A stretch of 63,032 nt of DNA, filler included, from Olpidium bornovanus S191 (taxonomy: Eukaryota > Fungi > Olpidiomycota): the NCBI GenBank assembly GCA_017911155.1. It is 27 parts of 27 records of this genome, joined end to end, with 100 filler letters (N's around TTAATTAATTAA, not from the genome) between each part and the next. Parts side by side here need not be neighbours in the genome. Positions count along the whole stretch, not along the records: positions 50,329 to 54,229 come from JAEFCI010007190.1; 26 more parts are not named here. The stretch is one strand, 5' to 3'. The position numbers and the translations under genes were made by a program. The notes below the pieces were generated by a model. That model saw only the letters and a program-made list of their open reading frames with translations. It ran no database searches and had not been told where the DNA came from. Positions 976 through 54,229 of this stretch are shown one piece after another. Numbering within the stretch: the stretch's first letter is position 1; every line of letters begins with the position of its first letter.

Positions 976-2420
976 TCACGGTTTGTTCTCCCTGATAACG
1001 CCGAGGAGACCGCAGAGGTCAGCCCACGACTTGTCGGCCTCCGCTGCGGCGGCGGCGGAGACGGCGGCCGGCAGGAGAGCGTCGTCGTGTTCGAGCCTGA
1101 ACCGCCAGGGAGCGCCGGCGACCGAAATCGCCGCACCGGGCTCCAGGCGAGCTTCCGTGTCGTCGATCCCTCGCAGGACGAGCCTGGCAGCCGGGAACGC
1201 CATCGTCGAGGAGGCGGAGGGTTTTGTGGACGCCGCCCCGGCCCCCACCTGCGCGCCGCCTGCCGCCGGGACGACAGCGACGACCAGCGAGGCGCCGTCG
1301 GCCGAGGGAGGGCGGTGCGCTCGTGGGGAGGCCGAGGCTCGGCGCCGCGCCTCGAAAATGCCAGACTCGGGCGTCTCCGCCGAAACTACCGCACGGGCCT
1401 CCTCATCCGCAGAGCACCTTCCAAGAGCTGTGCAGGCAGACGCCGCAGTATCCGGTACTTCCAGACGAGGTTCTATATCTTCCAACGTCACCTCCCTCGT
1501 TGAGTTGGACGCCTTGTGGCGCCGCCGCTTCGTGTCCCGATCCAGCAGGCCGGTCGAAAGTTCCGAGCGGGACAGGTCGGGCAGAGTGTAGAGGCTAGCA
1601 GCGCCACGGGGTCACGTCTTCACTTCTTCCGCCGCCCACACCTGACCCGATCGTCACGCGACTGTCGTTCCCAAAGCGGCGCCCTCAAAATTTGGCACAC
1701 AAAGACACACGGCTGACTTGAACGCGTGGACTCATTCAGAGCGCGAGTGTGCGGCTGAGGCGAACAACCACGGCGCCAGTCCGATGGCAGCCTTGGTGGC
1801 TTCGTGATTTCCGTGGCGTACGGCATAACGGGATCTCCGATTTCCACCGGTGTTTTGCGTAACAGTTGAAGAGACGGGCTGTTCATCGCAGGACAGGTCC
1901 CTTTGTGAAGCCTTCGTTGTTATTGAGGTCCTTCCAAGAGGGCCTTCTCCTGGCTTCCTGCAGCCAGACTTCAAGAGATGCCTTCCGTTTCCCGCCTCCT
2001 TCTTTGCGAGACTGCTGCGTCGGCCGGCAGCAACGGAAGCAGGGTGGGTAGGTAGGCCTCAGCAGCACTAGCACCAGCAGCAGTGTTGATAACCTAGGCA
2101 GCACAACAGCGGCGTTGACCTCACCAGGGCAGTGCGTAGCAGTCTCTTCTCGCCGTCTTGCATTGGCGTTCAACGCATCACATTCGCGAAAAACGAGACT
2201 GACACTGCAGAAGTACGGTCGGAACTGAAACATTGGGCAGCTCACCTAATGAAACGGAACAGAGTCCATTCACACGACATAGGTGGAATGACGACGGGAC
2301 GCAGGCGATTAGGTGTCAGCTGGAGAGGTGTGGAACTCACCTTGGTGACGCGCGGACTTGCCCAGGAATCAAGAAAGATCGTGAAAACTGAATGTTGAAT
2401 TTTTTCTGGGGTAAACGTGA
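976..2420 (-). CDS. Probable spliced gene fragment, product unassigned
   Basis: The minus frame is open from about 1610 to 976 (LYTLPDLSRSELSTGLLDRDTKRRRHK...DKSWADLCGLLGVIRENKP). Upstream there are exon-like pieces with a GTGAGT donor after FTIFLDSWASPRVTK. No recognisable family motif. Confidence 0.3.
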
Positions 2421-2476
2421 AGAAGTCATCTCTACGTTTCACCTCCAACCTGGAACGCTTTTGTCTTGGCCGCATG

Positions 2477-2576
2477 NNNNNNNNNNNNNNNNNNNNNNNN
2501 NNNNNNNNNNNNNNNNNNNNTTAATTAATTAANNNNNNNNNNNNNNNNNNNNNNNNNNNNNNNNNNNNNNNNNNNN
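2477..2576. other. Artificial contig linker N44-TTAATTAATTAA-N44 (first of 26)
   Basis: Identical 100-bp spacer with stops in all six frames, starting at 2477, 4761, 6144, 8890, 11415, 14025, 18241, 21856, 23309, 24930, 26234, 28198, 29796, 31051, 33231, 35329, 38704, 41278, 43076, 46411, 48656, 50229, 54230, 56815, 59306 and 61856. Confidence 0.99.
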
Positions 2577-4538
2577 CATCCGCTTGATCCTCTTTCGTTT
2601 TCTTTTTGGTGCGCTTCCTCTTCTTCGCATCTTCCCGGTTTCTTTTCTTCGGGAACGTCTGCTTGTAACACGAGAGCAGCTCCTAGAATACGGCGGGTCA
2701 GGCAAACATCAATTTGAACTCGGCACCACTCCGCGCGGCTTTCCCGCACGGACCATCCATCCCCACCTCTATCAGCGAGGTTGCCTCATCCGGCTCGGAC
2801 ATGAGCTGCAGAGCTGCATGCGAGAGCATGAGCTCGAACGCGCGGTGCTCCGCCCCGCTGCCGTCAGCGCTCGTCTTGCGGATCTCCTTACGCATCCTCT
2901 CGACGGCCTTGACGACCTTGGATCTCGCCACGGCGGCCTCCTCGCTGAGTGGCTTGATCAGCGTGAGCTCCTCCGGCCTGGACTCCAGTTCCAGAACGGT
3001 CCGCAGCGCCTTATAAGCCCAGAACTCGCCGTCAGCGGTTGCGCCCTGCTCTATGCTCCTCTTTCGCGGCCTCGCCTGAGAGCCCTGCTTGTCCTCCCCT
3101 TGGCCCCCGTCGTTGGGATTGACGGGCGGTATGGCCGACGAGAGATCGCCCAGCAAGCTCAGGAACCGCTCGCGACACATCGTTCGTGTCTTCTCGCTTA
3201 AAGGCGGATTAGGTGCCGGACCCGGGAAGACGTTCGTGTCCGTTTTCACTTTGAAGAACCCGTGCACGAGGAAGAAGCGGAGCACGCGCTGTAGCAAATC
3301 TTCGTCCTTGGTTAGGCTTTTGCTTCGCGTCATCGACAGAAGGCCCGACGCCGCGAAGGCGCGCGTCGCTTCCACATTTCCCCGGTCGTTCGAATTGTCC
3401 CTAATATATTAACCAGCGCAAGAACCGTGAGGAACACAAACAGCCAGCCCGCGCCCGTTTGCTTCTGTGCATACCGTTCCGCCTCGGTACCCAAGAAAAG
3501 AGCCATAAGGTAATCCGTATAATCGTTGAGCCCTTGGACATCCAGCATCGCCGTCAACGACTCTATCGTTTTCGTGTTGGTCTGCTTATCAAAGCTAACA
3601 GTGCAAGTTTTCCCGGTAAGCTGCATAAGCAAGGTAAGACCCGCGGCCTTGTTTGTTTCCGCAACCGTTAAAACCGTTTTAATCTGCAATCACCGTGACA
3701 TGTCAGCATTTTACCCAATGCCGAAAACAATTCGCTGGATTCCGCAGCCCATACAGCATGGTGTGCAGCCTTGTTGAGGTACATCTCATGAGACGCCAGC
3801 TGACTGGTAAGCGTCTTCACGAAATTCGGTGTGAACAGCCGCGGTGCCTCGGATTCCGGTAGCTGCGGGAGGAGCTTTTCGAACAGCTTGAAACCCCAGT
3901 ACTTGCGCTCGGGAGTGGCAGTCGGACTGAACAAGCCGTCTGCAGGCGAAGCAACCCGCGGTTAGGACATTTTGCGAACGAATGCTGCACCAGAGGCAAG
4001 ATCGCAGTTGTTTGGATGTGGCCTCATACCGTCCACGACCGTCCTCCACAGGTCGTGTAGGGTTATGTGCCCGCTGGCGATCTCCTTGACGCCGTTGGCT
4101 TGGTTGCCTTTTCTTTTCTTGCTCGGTTTCGTCTCCTCCATATGCTTCATGACAGCGGCGAAGACGACGTCCCAAACGCCGTGGAGCTGCGCAGACCATG
4201 AGCCGGAACCGGGCACCCCAGGATTCCCAGATTCGCGGAGCACGGTGGAAAGGCGTCGCAGGTTTGCCCGATGCAGCGGATCGCCGTGCTCCCATGTCGG
4301 CAGGTAGGTCGACAAGTTTTTATTCTGCGGTGGAATTCGTAGCGGTCAGAAAATCTGTTCCCGGCTCCAAACTATAGGATGTCGCCCAGCCGGAACTAGG
4401 CATTCACAGGTCCCTTACAGGGAAAAGTGCCCTCAGTCTTAGAGCAATTTCCAGATGCTCCGGCTCCTCGATTTCGCGCTCGAACACCCTCGGCAGAAAC
4501 CAGTCCACTGCCACCTCCGCGTAAGGCTGCCTCGTCAC
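2577..4538 (-). CDS. POL5: DNA polymerase phi / Pol5 / MYBBP1A family nucleolar protein (partial, multi-exon)
   Basis: Successive exons carry Pol5-family motifs: GSWSAQLHGVWDVVF, LWRTVVDG, ERKYWGFKLF..LFTPNFVKTL..YLNKAA, FDKQTNTKTIE, LRFFLVHGFF, CRERFLSLLGDLSS, DGEFWAY, AFELMLSHAALQL. Exons are separated by GT-AG introns. Confidence 0.85.
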
Positions 4539-48594: not shown

Positions 48595-50954
48595 TCTGGC
48601 GTTGGGCGGACGACACGTTAAAAAGCCCCATACCGGGGGGGGGGGGGGGGGGGAGNNNNNNNNNNNNNNNNNNNNNNNNNNNNNNNNNNNNNNNNNNNNT
48701 TAATTAATTAANNNNNNNNNNNNNNNNNNNNNNNNNNNNNNNNNNNNNNNNNNNNCATGGTTGGATCGGGAGGCTGCGGAGAATTCGTCCCAGAGTTCTT
48801 TTTGCTGGTTTAGCGGGTTCGGACCTGGGTTGGCGGGTGCTGCGGGCCGCAAAGCGCGTATTGAGTGTCGCGGTTTCTCTGTGGGCTGAGAGATTTCTTG
48901 CGCGCGGCAGCATTCAGTTGCGCTCGTAACTGGAAACGGGCGGCAACTGGAAGGATGGCAAAAATTTGCTGACCTAGGCAGAGGGGCTGTCGTTTCGTGT
49001 TTCAAAAGTGGCGCGGCGCGTACGGAGGGCGTGACGCAGCAGTTTGCGACGTCGAATGCAGGATAGATTGGCGGGCGGCTTGGGACGGATGGAGAAGCGG
49101 GAAAACGTGGAGGAGCCATGCGGAAACTCGCGGGTACAGCGGCTCGGTGCCTTCTGCGTATTTGGCCGATCTCCCGATGACAAAGACGGTAACACATGAA
49201 GGCGCGACGCGGCTACCGACGCAGGGGCTGTTTCTGCCGCGGCGAATCCCGCTGCATTCACTGCAGCCCTGCCGTCGACGGCATCTGCCTTCGTGGACTT
49301 GCCGTTACAATCGAATTGGAGACGAGGGCGATGCTGTGTTTAGTGCGTTTAGTGCGGCCGGCGTCGGTAGTGCTATTTTGGTACGGGGAAATCAGCACAA
49401 AAAAGGGCCTCCGTGAATCTGCCGAGCCAGATGCCGGTTTTGGCGCGGTGGACGCCAGCAACCGGTGGGCCGACGAGGGCAACAGAAAAGGTGCCGCAGC
49501 GGTGGGTATGATGTGCCTAGCAGTAGCATTGGGAGAGACGTGCGCCGGCGCAGAGGATATCCTGCGGGCCATCTTTCGCTTTGGGCGGTGGGGAAAGGTG
49601 GGGGGGGAGGGGAGCGGGGCTTTCGTGAGTGCCTCCTGCGCGCTCTGCGCGTGCTGGACGGCCCGAGACGCATAGCAAGCGCACTCACTGAAACAACACC
49701 GCCGCGATTTCCGCCGATTTTGCGCTGGGGAATTCGCACGGCGGCGCGGGGGCGAACCGCGCGGGGCGTCGCGCGATCGCGCACGTGTAAGTAACTGCGG
49801 GGTGCTGTCGTTGCTTTTTGAGCGTTCGGCCGTTAAGGAGGAACTGAAAAGCGTCGGCGGCCCGCAAACCGCCAGTTTCGACGCCGAGGGGCCACATAAT
49901 CCGAAAAGCCCCTCTGAAAAGCTTGACGGAGGGTGCTTTTTGGATGCCGGTTGCGTTAGCACCCGCGGGGCTGCGAGGGTAACTGTCTAGCCGGACCATC
50001 GTTTTGGACCCGGGACGGGAGGCGATGGTGCAATGCAAGCGGCGTGGCGCCAGACGCGCAAAACGGAGTCCGTTGCGCGAGGCGCCTTCTTAGGCGGACT
50101 CGACAGCCATGGGGGAAGATGTTGCGGAGAAGCAACGTAAGAGGGGCGGAGGCTTGGTGGAAGTTGCAGGATCAGGGAACTATAGAGAATTTGCGATTAT
50201 TTTTTGCACGACCCGTGCGGGACCCAAANNNNNNNNNNNNNNNNNNNNNNNNNNNNNNNNNNNNNNNNNNNNTTAATTAATTAANNNNNNNNNNNNNNNN
50301 NNNNNNNNNNNNNNNNNNNNNNNNNNNNCCAAGGCATTTAGAGTGCGCTTGGTAGTCTCAATGCCGACGTTTTCTTTGTGGACTTAAAGTATTTTAGTCG
50401 TGTTTGCATGCTTCGACCGTGGGGTTTCACGGGTCATCACCGCGCGAACACGTTTCGTGACTTGCATCCCTTGCAGCTTGACGGGGAAAGACCTAAACTA
50501 AGTGGTTTTAGACTCATTTTAAAGGCCTCGACGAGGCCTTTCGAACGAGCCTTGAACCGGCTTGGGTAGGTATCTGTGTGTCTGGCGGTGTGGCTTCAAA
50601 GTCGGCCTCCATGTTCAAACCGCGGTAAAAGGAGAAAAAGTGACGTACCTCGGCCTCCAGAGCAGATAGAGACCTGCGGTTTTTTTGGACGGTTTCTCGT
50701 GGAGTTGGTCACCTGACTGACCTATTCTTTGGTCTATGGACCTGCTGCGGTTGGGCAGGCAAAACGATTCTGCATGGAATCGTTAGGAGCCTTACATGGA
50801 TGCTTGGCGTGGGAGTTCCTTTTTGCTCGTTTCGAGTGTGCGGGTTGCGGGCGGGCCCCGCCTCACCCGAGCACCCATCCCCAGCCAACTCGGCGGACCC
50901 CCCATTCATTGTCAGAATCCTTGTCGAAAATTTCCTCAGAACCTCCGTCAGATT

Positions 50955-51685
50955 TGTTCGTTTTGAGGGTTTTACGCGCGCCATTGGGCGTTGTATTATA
51001 CATAGAGTTTACGCGTTATAAGGGATAAAACTTGTGGGGTTCTAACCAAGGAAGGTAGGAAGTAGAGCGAAGTTCAAAGTTCAACACTCCCCCTCGATGA
51101 CATGAGAAAGAAGTGGAGAGTCATCGCAAACAAAATAGAGCGAAGCTAACATTAAGAAATGGGCAACAAACCAAGATGGGTGCGATGAGCTACAAACTTC
51201 GGTTTCGGCAAACCAGCCGGACAATCTCCTGTGCGGCCGCAGAGGCAGCGACGAGTTCTGCCTCGGTAGAAGAAAGCTTGATAGACGATTGTTTCGTTGA
51301 TTTCCAAGAGATGCAACAATTATTGTGAAAGATGACATAACCCGTAATCGAATGCCGGGTCACAAGATCATTTGCATAATCACTATCGGAGTATGCCACA
51401 AGATGACCAATCGGTAACGTAGAAGAGGGCGATCCAAATGATAAGCCATAATGAGCAGTACCCTTGAGATACTGAAGAAGTCGTTTGAAAGCATGCCAGT
51501 GGCCATCAGAAGGATTAGACATGAAGCGACAAAGAAAACTCATCGCACTGGCAGTTTCCAGACGAGTATTCACAGCAAGATACAGCACACTGCTGATAAG
51601 CTCGCGATATCGATTTACTTCATGCGCAGATGCTGTATCAACACGCGGCATCAGAAGACGAACAGCATCAGGCTTGAGGGGTGTG
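50955..51685 (-). mobile_element. 3' end of a Ty1/Copia element: RT end/RNase H start, PPT 51087-51095, 3' LTR 51086-50955
   Basis: YRELISSVLYLAVNTR, HWHAFKRLLQYLKGT, AYSDSDYA..TRHSITGY..ISWKSTKQ..SSTEAE, then GAGGGGGAG and TGTTGAAC...AAAACGAACA. The LTR shares TTAGAACCCC, TAACGCGTAAA and AAAACC motifs with the LTR at 12748. Confidence 0.9.
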
Positions 51686-52010
51686 TGTTAGATTATGTCT
51701 TCCTTCCTGCCTCATTCTTTTCTTCCTGCTTTACTTCACTTTAACACGGGGCGGTTAGCTCCACAATATAACGCGTTCACGCGCACCAAAACCATCAAAA
51801 AATTATGAGCCCAACCCGGACCTGACGGACGCAGCCCGCAGCGCAGCTCCTGCCGCCCTTCTCCGCCACTCTCGCCCTCTCGGCGATCCGGAGAACCGGA
51901 GCGGCGCTTCTCTCTCTCCTTCGACGCTTCCCGCCTTCGGCCCCGTCGAAGCCCCTGCCGCAGCGCCGCCTTCCACTCGTCCGTCACCGCTCTCCGCCAA
52001 AGCGCCTCTC
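51686..52010 (+). mobile_element. Degenerate LTR (about 51686-51800), mutated PBS and GC-rich leader of the same short-LTR family
   Basis: TGTTAG start, GGCGGTTAG and TAACGCGT motifs, and AATTATGAGCCCAACCCGGACCTGACGG, which matches GGTTATGAGCCCAACTCGGACCTGACGG at 42442-42415. Confidence 0.7.
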
Positions 52011-52013
52011 CAT

Positions 52014-52195
52014 CTGATTCTGCGTCAGAATCCCCGTCAGATTTTGCATCAGAATCCCCTTCAAATTGTGGTCAAATTTCCTCCAGATTTTGCGTCAGAA
52101 TCCCTTTCAGATTCTGAGAATTCTCGTTAGATCTTGCATCAGAATCCCCTTCTAATTCTGCGTCAGAGTCACCTTCAGATTCTCAGAATTCTGGT
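52014..52195. repeat. Degenerate tandem repeat, about 24-bp unit TTCTGCGTCAGAATCCCCTTCAGA
   Basis: About 6 imperfect copies. A related motif is at 50908-50954. Confidence 0.7.
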
Positions 52196-52209
52196 GGGGC
52201 CTGCCTGAC

Positions 52210-52568
52210 TGTTGGAATGGCTTCGCAGGGCGAGCCAGACACCCAGTGAATAGGGCAGATAGCTCAGTTGGTAGAGCGTTCCTCCGGGATAAGGTCTCGA
52301 GTTTGACCCTCAGTCGGCCCACTTTTGATGCGCAACAGGTTATGAGCTCAATCGTGACTTTGTCTCTCCGATTGTGGTTGCACGGGTGGCCCAGCCCCGT
52401 TGACAGCAGTGCCTGAGGTGCTTGACTCAAAGGGGGGTGTTGGAATGGCTTCGCAAGGCGAGCCAGACACCTAGCAAATAGGGCAGATAGCTCAGTTGGT
52501 ACGCATCCCTTCGGGATAGGGAAAGTCCCGAGTTTGACCCTCGGTCGGCCCACTTTTGATGCGCAACA
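52210..52568 (+). mobile_element. Complete TRIM with tRNA-derived LTRs (Pol III-type TRIM)
   Basis: LTR-A 52210-52337 and LTR-B 52438-52568 (both TGTTG...CAACA), PBS GGTTATGAGCTC 52338-52349, PPT AAAGGGGGG 52429-52437, and TSD CTGAC at 52205-52209 and 52569-52573. Confidence 0.92.
52481..52557 (+). ncRNA. tRNA-like module in LTR-B (A box, anticodon arm, T arm/B box, T4 terminator); more degenerate copy at 52253-52326
   Basis: Acceptor GGGCAGA/TCGGCCC (6 of 7 pairs), TAGCTCAGTTGGT A box, TCCCT-TCGGGAT-AGGGA arm, CCGAG-TTTGACC-CTCGG arm, then TTTT at 52554-52557. Probably not a functional tRNA; isotype not assignable. Confidence 0.8.
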
Positions 52569-52984
52569 CTGACCTATTGTTTGGTCTACGCTAATGGTGG
52601 GGTTGGGCAGATACTACAATTCTGCATGGAATCGCTAGTGCCCTGCACAGCTGCTTAGTGGGGGGTTTCCTTTCAGCTCAGTGGGGCTGGGGGGTGGGCT
52701 GGGGAGTCCGCCGAGTGGGCTGGGGGGGTTGCTCGGGCGGGCTGGTGGCACCGCCAGGTGGGGCGGGACCCCGCACCCCGCACACTCGAAACGAACAAAA
52801 AGGAACGCCCACGCTAAGCATCCATGTAAGGCGCTAACGATTCCATGTAGAATCGTTTTGCCTGGCCAACCCCAGCAGGTGCATAGACCAAAGAATAGGT
52901 TGAACAGGTGAGCAACTCTGCGAGAAACCGTCCAAAAAAAACCGCAGCTCTCTATCTGCTGTGGAGGCCGAGGTACGGCATTTT

Positions 52985-53950
52985 TTCTCCTTTTAGCACG
53001 GTTTGAACATGGAGGCTGACTTTTAGCACGGTTTGAACATGGAGGCTGACTTTGAATTCACACCGCCAGACACACAGCGACCTACCCAAGCCGGTTCAAA
53101 GGTCGTTCGAAAGGCTTGTCGAGGCCTTTAAAACGAGTCTAAAACCACTTGGTTTGGGTCTTTCCCTGTCAAGCTGCAAGGAATGCAAGTCACGAGCCAT
53201 GTGAGCTCGGTGAAAACCCGTGAAACGGGACACCGCGGTCGAACCATGGTCGCCATGGGCGCCATGGTCGCCCGACCGTGCAGAGAGGAAAGGAAGGAAC
53301 AAAGGTGCGGAGGGCGTCGCGGGGGGCCAGGAGGCTGGCCAACGCCATCCATGGTCGCGGTTTCTCCTTTAGCACTGTTCGAACATGGAGGCTGACTTCG
53401 AAACCACACCGCGGGACACACAAGTGCCTACCCAAGCCGGTTCAAGGCTCGTTCGAAAGGCCTCGTCGAGGCCTTTGAAATGAGTCTAAAACCACTTGGT
53501 TTAGGCCTTTCCCCGTCAAGCTGCAAGGGATGCAAGTCACGTAACGTGTTAGCGCGGTGAAAATCCGTGAAACCCCGCGGTCAAAGCATGGTGGTCGCCA
53601 TGGTCGCCATGGTCGCCCGACCGCACAAGGAGGTAAGGAAGAAAGGAAGGTGCGGAAGGTGTTGCGGAGGGGCTGGAGGCTGGCCGACGCCATCCATGGT
53701 CGCGTTTTCTCCCGTAGCACTGTTTGAACATGGAGGCTGACTTCGAAACCACTCCGCGGGACACAAAGGTACCTACCCAAGCCGGTCAAGGCTCGTTCAA
53801 AAGGCCTCGTTGAGGCCTTTAGAACGAGTCGGTTCGTTTAGGTTTTTCCCTGTCAAGCTGCAAGGGATGCAAGTCACGAGCTATGTTAGCGCGGTGAAAA
53901 CCCGTGAAATAGGTCGCCGCTGTGGAACCATGGTTGTCATGGTCGCCATG
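52985..53950. repeat. Tandem repeat, about 345-bp unit, about 2.7 copies
   Basis: GAACATGGAGGCTGACTT at 53035, 53381 and 53726. Also an exact 30-bp duplication at 52991-53050. Confidence 0.9.
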
Positions 53951-53979
53951 GTCGCCGGACCGCGAACGACGACCATGGT

Positions 53980-54229
53980 TTTGCACGTGCGAATCTTCTT
54001 TTTTTGCAAGGTGCGAATTTTCTTTTTTTTGTGACGTGCCAATCTTCTTTTTTTTGCCACGTACCAATCTTCTTTTTTTTGCGACGTACGAATCTTCTTT
54101 TTTCGCGACATGCAAATCTTCTTTTTTTTGCGACGTGCAGATCTTCTTTTTTTTGCGACGTGCGAAACTTCTTTTTTTAAGAGGTGCGAATCTTTTTTTT
54201 GCGACGTGCGAATCTTCTTTTTTTTGCGA
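53980..54229. repeat. Minisatellite, about 24-bp unit GCGACGTGCGAATCTTCTTTTTTT, about 10 copies
   Basis: Visible tandem array running to the contig end. Confidence 0.9.

Follow-up and report, generated by a model that had tools for sequence, protein, structure and literature searches.

What kind of element carries, in each of its two long terminal repeats (LTRs), a tRNA-like unit that is closed by a run of four Ts, and how could such an element be transcribed in full? The question is raised by positions 52205-52573 of a 63,032-nucleotide stretch, filler included, joined from 27 records of the Olpidium bornovanus S191 genome assembly (GCA_017911155.1; this whole stretch is called the window here). 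At this locus, a first-pass annotation of the sequence had described a 359-bp terminal-repeat retrotransposon in miniature (TRIM) with a tRNA-derived RNA polymerase III (Pol III) promoter in its LTRs. We examined the piece at window positions 50329-54229, which is the reverse complement of the 3901-bp contig JAEFCI010007190.1 (L002). The element is likely to be a non-autonomous LTR retrotransposon of the Helenus kind (TRIMp3), present as an aged and decayed copy from an uncatalogued O. bornovanus family of ~364 bp that would have used Pol III for its genomic RNA and borrowed its enzymes from a Copia-type element.

Architecture of the window copy

Every part of the element that had been described was found where it had been placed: a 128-bp LTR, a 100-bp interior and a 131-bp LTR make up the 359 bp, with CTGAC on each side. 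The features are as follows (identities to further copies refer to the contigs L003 and L004, introduced below).

52205-52209, no strand: left target-site duplication (TSD), CTGAC, identical to 52569-52573
52210-52337, plus strand: 5′ LTR, 128 bp, TGTTGG...GCGCAACA (...CAACA), a direct repeat of 52438-52568, 87.9% identical
52210-52252, plus strand: U3-like leader of the 5′ LTR, 43 nt, family-specific, upstream of the Rfam tRNA match
52253-52321, plus strand: decayed tRNA-like unit of the 5′ LTR (Rfam RF00005, 32.7 bits; no call by ARAGORN)
52260-52271, plus strand: A box of the 5′ LTR, TAGCTCAGTTGG
52299-52309, plus strand: B-box-like sequence of the 5′ LTR, GAGTTTGACCC
52323-52326, plus strand: TTTT of the 5′ LTR, one nucleotide beyond the tRNA-like unit; putative end of R and weak Pol III terminator
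52327-52337, plus strand: U5-like tail, GATGCGCAACA, 11 nt, the most conserved LTR segment
52338-52349, plus strand: primer-binding site (PBS), GGTTATGAGCTC, adjoining the 5′ LTR with zero gap and complementary to the tRNA-iMet anticodon stem-loop
52338-52437, plus strand: non-coding interior, 100 bp; identity to the L003 and L004 interiors 85-90%
52429-52437, plus strand: polypurine tract (PPT), AAAGGGGGG (consensus GAGGGGGGG), adjoining the 3′ LTR
52438-52568, plus strand: 3′ LTR, 131 bp, direct repeat of the 5′ LTR
52481-52552, plus strand: tRNA-like unit of the 3′ LTR (RF00005, 36.4 bits; ARAGORN tRNA-Pro(GGG) at 52481-52553)
52488-52499, plus strand: A box of the 3′ LTR
52530-52540, plus strand: B-box-like sequence of the 3′ LTR
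52554-52557, plus strand: TTTT of the 3′ LTR; proposed terminator setting the 3′ end of the genomic RNA
52569-52573, no strand: right TSD, CTGAC, copy of 52205-52209

Both tRNA-like units contain the A box TAGCTCAGTTGG and the B-box-like sequence GAGTTTGACCC, and the element has only two runs of at least four Ts, each a TTTT that begins one base beyond its unit. When the piece was scanned permissively with Rfam (E up to 1), there were two matches only, both to the tRNA family RF00005 and both above its gathering score of 29, so that the window units pass the Rfam tRNA threshold, if weakly. The same scan gave no match to 5S rRNA, the unit that marks Cassandra and Ajax elements. Open reading frames (ORFs) overlapping the element had no match in Pfam.

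The window copy has decayed considerably. Its LTRs agree at 116 of 132 aligned columns, with 11 substitutions (10 transitions and 1 transversion) and two small indels that cluster in the anticodon arm of the tRNA-like unit. We considered gene conversion as the source of this divergent patch and rejected it, as the patch is a cluster of transitions plus the two indels. With LTRs 12% apart, a C-to-T change in the PBS and TTTGA in place of TTCGA in both B boxes, this copy is no longer fit.

Further copies and mobility of the family

A protein search with a spurious 133-aa ORF, which crosses the TRIM in antisense orientation, led to three proteins annotated as "MAG: Olpidium bornovanus". The first lies on JAEFCI010007190.1 itself, and the other two lie on JAEFCI010008882.1 (L003) and JAEFCI010011124.1 (L004). 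Each of the latter contigs holds a complete LTR-interior-LTR element (contig coordinates):

L003 317-681, contig minus strand: 365-bp copy, TSD CGACC
L004 355-716, contig minus strand: 362-bp copy, TSD GTCAG

These copies are 86-87% identical to the window copy over their full length, with 85-89% identity between their LTRs and the window 5′ LTR, and PBS and PPT adjoin the LTRs in them too. The 5-bp TSDs are perfect in all three copies and differ from one another (CTGAC, CGACC and GTCAG). The flanks of the three copies are unrelated, the best of 12 comparisons reaching p ~0.04 before correction. That best case was a 26-nt similarity between the left flanks of the piece and of the L004 copy, which shuffling placed at chance level once the 12 tests are considered; it therefore points neither to an error in the element boundary nor to a target motif. 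Because three full copies carry three different TSDs, the family is mobile and the arrangement is not due to chance. The first-pass annotation had proposed that an absence of further full copies with TSDs would refute its reading; the L003 and L004 copies answer this directly. The TG...CA LTRs, the PBS and PPT at the LTR junctions and the three different duplications together show that the family transposed through the LTR-retrotransposon route, making 5-bp duplications.

These data also bear on whether a tRNA pseudogene or a tRNA-derived short interspersed nuclear element (SINE) was duplicated locally in tandem and now mimics a pair of LTRs. The two tRNA-like units do lie in direct orientation, 228-231 bp apart, as such an event would leave them. 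Finding LTR-interior-LTR on three contigs with different perfect TSDs and unrelated flanks already refutes this origin, and the TG...CA termini, the exact placement of PBS and PPT at the LTR junctions and the lack of a poly(A) or LINE-like (long interspersed nuclear element-like) tail also oppose it. We regard it as barely credible.

LTR identity within elements is 88-92%, compared to 83-93% between elements. Since the LTRs of a pair are no closer to each other than to those of other copies, all three insertions are similarly old, and differences among the copies reflect neutral decay rather than function.

The L004 copy lies inside another retroelement. It splits a decayed Copia integrase, with a gag_pre-integrs match (E=5e-6) on one side and an rve match (E=1e-3) on the other, both below the Pfam cut-offs. 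The TRIM sits at the junction of the two Copia parts (2-354 and 728-1084), with the integrase antisense. By arithmetic, excising the element plus one TSD restores no single frame, so the Copia copy is itself frameshifted. Elsewhere on this contig, a minus-strand ORF at ~2122-3000 resembles, by eye only, a NASP/SHNi-TPR histone chaperone and is a candidate for one.

We also scanned more widely with patterns drawn from the LTRs. A metagenome scan with GTCGGCCCAC-N(3-7)-GATGCGCAACA gave one match, a chance occurrence within bacterial coding sequence that is GC-rich and lacks a tRNA-like unit. A pattern fitting all six LTRs had no match in prokaryote genomes or viral contigs; the positive control recovered all six LTRs.

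The family consensus and its tRNA-like unit

From the three copies we derived a 132-bp consensus LTR, consisting of the 43-nt leader, a 74-nt tRNA-like unit, TTTT and the 11-nt tail GATGCGCAACA. The tail is nearly invariant (1 change in 66 cells across the six LTRs), and T4 follows the tRNA-like unit in 6/6 LTRs. The consensus unit forms a near-perfect cloverleaf according to ARAGORN, with anticodon GGG, one A.G mismatch in the acceptor stem and C for U at position 33. Its boxes are canonical (A box TAGCTCAGTTGG, B box GAGTTCGACCC). The consensus PBS, GGTTATGAGCCC, is complementary to the tRNA-iMet anticodon loop, and GAGGGGGGG is the consensus PPT. RF00005 matched above its gathering score in all six LTRs (32.7-51.8 bits), with 41.1-51.8 bits in the less decayed L003 and L004 copies. 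Minimum free energy folding gave no such distinction: the units folded no better than shuffled sequences (z -0.2 to -1.1), and neither did a small hairpin in the leader.

The departures from the consensus carry a recognizable signature. Of 48 substitutions in the six LTRs, 30 are G>A or C>T, and 17 fall at CpG positions, which make up 14% of sites (~2.6-fold enrichment). TTTGA in both window LTRs and TTCAA in L004 are decay products of the CpG in the consensus B box. The pattern fits decay by cytosine deamination in the O. bornovanus genome, possibly of methylated repeats.

Could the units be functional tRNA-Pro genes that the element has spread? ARAGORN calls tRNA-Pro(GGG) in five of the six LTRs (in the window, the 3′ unit only) and in the consensus, and the best copy reaches 51.8 bits. 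However, the consensus has C33 where U33 is universal, together with the A.G acceptor mismatch, and the window units score only 33-36 bits. Moreover, to our knowledge, the consensus D-arm differs from that of tRNA-Pro in eukaryotes, where GGG is also not a usual proline anticodon. Most Helenus tRNA units were also concluded to be non-functional (Kojima 2024, PMC10886601). We consider functional tRNA-Pro genes very improbable. The first-pass annotation had named a real tRNA gene and mere background as two outcomes that would undo its reading, and the units are neither: they lie above the RF00005 cut-off, yet have C33, the mismatch and low scores in the window.

The likeness to tRNA nevertheless has consequences for annotation. 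ARAGORN run on this genome would add false tRNA-Pro(GGG) genes at these LTRs, whose units lie above the Rfam tRNA threshold. Three MAKER gene models for "hypothetical protein", BJ554DRAFT_404, BJ554DRAFT_1660 and BJ554DRAFT_3345, already run antisense over the TRIM copies (L002 1657-2078, L003 118-627 and L004 2-619), and these models are annotation artefacts.

A Helenus family in a new host phylum

TRIMs with tRNA-derived sequence in their LTRs ("TRIMp3") were described in 2024 under the name Helenus, from a screen limited to elements under about 1 kb (Kojima 2024, PMC10886601). The fungal families are 311-724 bp long and have 5-bp TSDs (PMC10886601); the first-pass annotation had correctly named the class and this TSD length. 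Tested against the structural definition of the class, the three copies (359, 365 and 362 bp) are non-coding, have tRNA units with A and B boxes in their LTRs, have PBS and PPT adjoining the LTRs and are flanked by 5-bp TSDs. By every structural criterion, the element is Helenus.

Two other kinds of element share part of this design. Cassandra, a plant TRIM, is also a non-autonomous LTR element with a unit derived from a Pol III gene, including promoter and terminator, in its LTRs; it differs in that the unit is 5S rRNA, its length is 565-860 bp and it is confined to plants. SINEs derived from tRNA (SINE2) are likewise short and non-coding, with a tRNA-derived head whose A and B boxes form an internal Pol III promoter, and have been proposed as the source of the Helenus unit (PMC10886601). 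They differ in lacking LTRs, PBS and PPT, in having a LINE-related or A-rich tail and in being moved by non-LTR elements. Unlike a SINE2, the Olpidium unit sits within a direct terminal repeat of 128-133 bp, with fixed 5-bp TSDs and no A-rich tail.

By sequence, the family appears to be new among the published consensus sequences that we compared. The Helenus catalogue clusters families at 75% identity and 75% coverage (PMC10886601). We searched its sequence file (DataS1.fa) for 12 family-specific 9-15-mers and aligned our consensus with 15 consensus LTRs out of ~250 consensus sequences. None of the 12 k-mers was present in DataS1.fa, the 43-nt leader showed only chance-level similarity to the 15 published LTRs, and no catalogued family matched in these comparisons. 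The tRNA-like unit is at most 75% identical to Helenus units, the closest being that of Helenus-1_AmAr (57/76). As this is hardly above the 72% found with a Selaginella unit and the 72% found with an oyster unit, it reflects a generic resemblance among tRNAs.

The host phylum is also new for Helenus, as far as the literature shows. O. bornovanus is placed in Olpidiomycota. The listed fungal hosts belong to Pucciniales, Agaricales and Russulales only (among them Agaricus, Coprinopsis and Amylostereum), and Olpidium is not mentioned (PMC10886601); the expectation that occurrence in this lineage would be novel was thus borne out. Because the Helenus screen was seeded from Repbase families and run against related genomes (PMC10886601), Olpidium was probably never examined. 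The paper describing the O. bornovanus assembly contains no analysis of transposable elements (TEs) (PMC7865070), and our literature search returned no other report of TEs in Olpidium or of further TRIMp3 elements. With this finding, Helenus/TRIMp3 reaches beyond Basidiomycota into Olpidium, which among zoosporic lineages is the closest to terrestrial fungi; it leaves the overall picture of the class unchanged.

The nearest counterparts in layout are Helenus families of rust fungi, namely Helenus-4_PTrit, Helenus-9_PSt and Helenus-1_HemVas (LTR/interior/total 130/95/355 bp, 112/97/321 bp and 116/79/311 bp, respectively; PMC10886601). They are in the same size class. Their LTRs run TGTTG...CA with a TGTTGGAAT start and have the tRNA-like unit in the 3′ part, followed by an exact T4 and a short tail. 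Their interiors open with GGTTATGAGCCCA, a tRNA-iMet anticodon-loop PBS that opens most published fungal Helenus interiors, and end in a G-rich PPT, and their TSDs are 5 bp. In sequence, however, they share no family-specific 9-15-mers with the Olpidium family, the leaders are at chance and the rust units are no closer than those of plant and oyster Helenus. The rust families are AT-rich and belong to Basidiomycota, while the Olpidium family has 56-59% GC and belongs to Olpidiomycota. Helenus families of agaricomycetes (Helenus-1_CCin, Helenus-2_CCin, Helenus-1_AB and Helenus-1_AmAr) also place the unit and then T4 near the LTR 3′ end and have 5-bp TSDs. They differ in their LTRs, which are 209-269 bp long compared to 132 bp in Olpidium, with unrelated leaders. 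The two with known interiors, Helenus-1_CCin and Helenus-1_AmAr, have the PBS TGGTAGCA..., which is complementary to tRNA-iMet at its 3′ end rather than to its anticodon loop.

The Olpidium family thus bears on whether Pol III-LTR hybrids in fungi have one ancient origin or arose repeatedly. The Olpidium and rust families share the PBS 13-mer GGTTATGAGCCCA, the TGTTGGAAT terminus and the placement of T4. We entertain, as an unlikely idea, that Helenus-type elements are more ancient and more common among fungi than the published lists suggest, and that a Copia-dependent TRIMp3 predating the split of Olpidiomycota and Dikarya was the parent of both, with the exact T4 beside the acceptor-like stem as a leaky terminator tuned to define R in a genomic RNA made by Pol III. 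The shared features could equally have arisen by convergence, imposed by Pol III and by one and the same type of Copia helper.

Assignment to O. bornovanus

The new host phylum would be an artefact if the contigs came from another fungus of cucumber roots, for example a basidiomycete, and had been binned wrongly. The assembly derives from a metagenome of non-axenic zoospores grown on cucumber roots (PMC7865070), from which a conservative tetranucleotide bin retained 13,695 of 160,327 contigs (29 Mb; PMC7865070). Dikarya hits occur in the raw data (PMC7865070), short contigs made only of TEs are the hardest to bin, and the rust families share the PBS and the TGTTGGAAT start. On the other side stand the element's GC content of 56% and the lack of any match to the published Helenus consensus sequences, including those of Coprinopsis, Agaricus and Amylostereum, which have the PBS TGGTAGCA... 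where the interior is known; this different PBS argues against the contigs being stray Coprinopsis-like DNA. In addition, no basidiomycete appears among 89 homologues of a Copia-type ORF adjacent to the TRIM, the best named match being another O. bornovanus protein, and four contigs of the bin carry related TE content. Together, these results make mis-binning distinctly unlikely.

A model for transcription and replication

A model that accommodates the architecture is that the internal A and B boxes would direct Pol III to start at or just upstream of the tRNA-like unit in the 5′ LTR. Some polymerases would pass the weak T4 there, continue through tail, PBS, interior and PPT into the 3′ LTR, transcribe its leader and tRNA-like unit, and stop at the 3′ T4. 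R would then consist of the tRNA-like unit plus T4 (~78 nt), with the 43-nt leader as U3 and the 11-nt tail as U5. Reverse transcription would be primed by a 5′ fragment of tRNA-iMet, its anticodon stem-loop annealed to GGTTATGAGCCC, as in Ty5 and copia, and a Copia-type element, itself a maker of 5-bp duplications, would provide reverse transcriptase and integrase in trans. Both the primer and the helper follow from the PBS and the TSD length. Transcription by Pol III from the tRNA-derived promoter and a Copia helper have both been proposed for Helenus, the first for the class and the second for the fungal families (PMC10886601).

The first-pass annotation had left as a puzzle how transcription passes the TTTT in the 5′ LTR. 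The puzzle is general to the class, and a leaky T4 could plausibly resolve it. T4 has been described as "essentially nonfunctional in vitro" in S. cerevisiae; with an RNA stem just upstream, such as an acceptor stem, it terminates with only moderate efficiency, whereas efficient termination takes six Ts (PMC9278858). If the yeast behavior applies, T4 lying against an acceptor-like stem would stop some polymerases and let others pass. T4 is also a recurrent feature: among 13 published fungal Helenus LTR consensus sequences, the first run of at least four Ts after the unit is exactly T4 in all 13, and 12 of them place it 22-30 nt downstream of the B box and leave 6-31 nt between it and a CA end. 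As these families are related to one another, the recurrence is suggestive only. Retroelements transcribed by Pol II face an equivalent problem, as they need to bypass the poly(A) signal in their own 5′ LTR.

The opposing possibility is an ordinary Pol II-transcribed TRIM, in which the tRNA-like unit is the passenger fossil of a SINE or tRNA gene that inserted into an ancestral LTR and has no role in transcription. Such an origin would account for the unexceptional folding of the unit (z -0.2 to -1.1) and would spare the element a T4 inside its 5′ LTR, which is awkward for a genomic RNA made by Pol III. It is also compatible with a homopolymer test that we applied to 14 published fungal Helenus LTRs, the 13 above among them. 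Upstream of the terminator, these have no runs of at least four Ts (10 expected from shuffles) and one run of at least four As (8 expected), so there is no strand-specific signal. Yet in the consensus, which stands for the sequence that moved, the cloverleaf is still near-perfect, the A and B boxes are canonical and a T run comes right after the acceptor-like stem; upstream of the unit, only 43 nt would be available for a Pol II promoter. This layout is found again in unrelated Helenus families, and Cassandra, with 5S in place of tRNA, is transcribed from the Pol III unit that it carries; its transcripts are reported to begin inside the 5S unit of the 5′ LTR and to finish inside that of the 3′ LTR. 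We therefore judge the Pol II alternative rather unlikely and favor transcription by Pol III.

Several points weigh against our account as a whole. Pol III use, the start site and read-through are what we infer from sequence. Since A runs are depleted as well, the test for strand-specific avoidance of T runs fails its control. All three copies are old, with no sign of current activity. The number of copies, reached through protein matches, stands at three, and attribution to the host depends on the tetranucleotide-binned metagenome of non-axenic zoospores. Finally, no autonomous partner was found among the coding-type elements of the piece and of L005, a further contig of the same bin. With its small size, GC-rich sequence and single T4 per LTR, the family is a substrate for asking how a Pol III transcript serves as the genome of an LTR element.

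The PBS and neighboring Copia-type elements

Ty5 and copia are members of the Copia superfamily that are primed by an internal tRNA-iMet fragment and make 5-bp TSDs. Like the TRIM, Ty5 and Drosophila copia have a PBS complementary to the tRNA-iMet anticodon stem-loop and 5-bp TSDs; they differ in being autonomous, transcribed by Pol II and ~5 kb long, compared to 0.36 kb and no coding capacity for the Olpidium element. The first-pass annotation had offered this PBS as possibly new. It is not, as the GGTTATGAGCCC-type PBS, complementary to the tRNA-iMet anticodon loop, was already dominant in fungal Helenus (PMC10886601).

The piece contains remnants of Copia-type elements close to the TRIM. 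On the minus strand, a 153-aa ORF (51190-51651) encodes the C-terminal part of a Copia-type reverse transcriptase/RNase H. It had no match in Pfam, and exact look-up of the protein returned no record. It has no close relative: its homologues are 34-59% identical, the best match is 50% identical and the named matches are scattered, including TNT1-94-like polyproteins and the O. bornovanus protein mentioned above. On the same strand, the ORF is followed by a PPT-like GAGGGGGAG (51087-51095) and then by an LTR-like start, TGTTGAAC (51079-51086). Together these form the 3′ end of a Copia element that has decayed and, near 51684, has been truncated on the N-terminal side.

Adjoining this antisense fragment, the plus strand has a 115-bp LTR-like segment, TGTTAGATT...CATCAAAA (51686-51800), followed at 51801-51814 by the PBS AATTATGAGCCCAA, which is the tRNA-iMet anticodon-loop PBS of the TRIM with GG changed to AA. 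The LTR-like segment showed no significant similarity to the minus-strand LTR-like end (p ~0.15). L005 holds, on its minus strand, an LTR end (...AAACGACA) and the PBS GGTTATGAGCCCAAGG, after which come a leader and an ORF for gag (Retrotrans_gag, E=2e-5). At ~3430-3540 of the same contig is a mirror-image arrangement, in which an antisense Copia RNase H fragment lies against a short LTR and the same PBS.

GGTTATGAGCCCAA is common to three different elements. Beyond the PBS, similarity of the TRIM LTR and interior to the coding-type LTR elements of the piece and L005 was at chance level, and no intact Copia element was seen among the elements examined. The proposal that the TRIM was mobilized by the particular Copia family in the window consequently gains no specific support.

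Flanking sequence and surrounding repeats

A homologous stretch at about 50711-50725 had been put forward as an empty site supporting the TSD. This stands in part. On the right of the TRIM, the flank shows homology to 50716-50828 (79/107 identical) and, inverted, to 52799-52900; the homology starts at the right TSD, and CTGAC is present once in the 50711-50725 region. By contrast, the 55 nt to the left of the TRIM (TSD excluded) aligned to the paralogue with a local score of 7.0, against a shuffle mean of 6.9, and left of the TSD the match is limited to CCTG. We therefore rejected the region as a full empty site; with homology on the right side only, the paralogue confirms the right boundary alone.

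The remainder of the piece is rich in repeats. The right flank (52572-52703) is near-palindromic with 52769-52900, as part of a nested inverted structure, and 50407-50904 is an inverted copy of 52700-53248 (80%). A 345-bp tandem repeat occupies 53022-53963 (2.7 copies, 83% matches), with the same sequence inverted at 50407-50637 (90%). About 20 nt to the left of the TSD lies a 24-bp minisatellite, GATTCTGCGTCAGAATCCCCTTCA (52016-52183; 7.2 copies, 67% matches), to which a short stretch at 50904-50954 is related. Finally, a 25-bp minisatellite, TTTTGCGACGTGCGAATCTTCTTTT (53979-54229; 10.3 copies, 82% matches), reaches the end of the contig.

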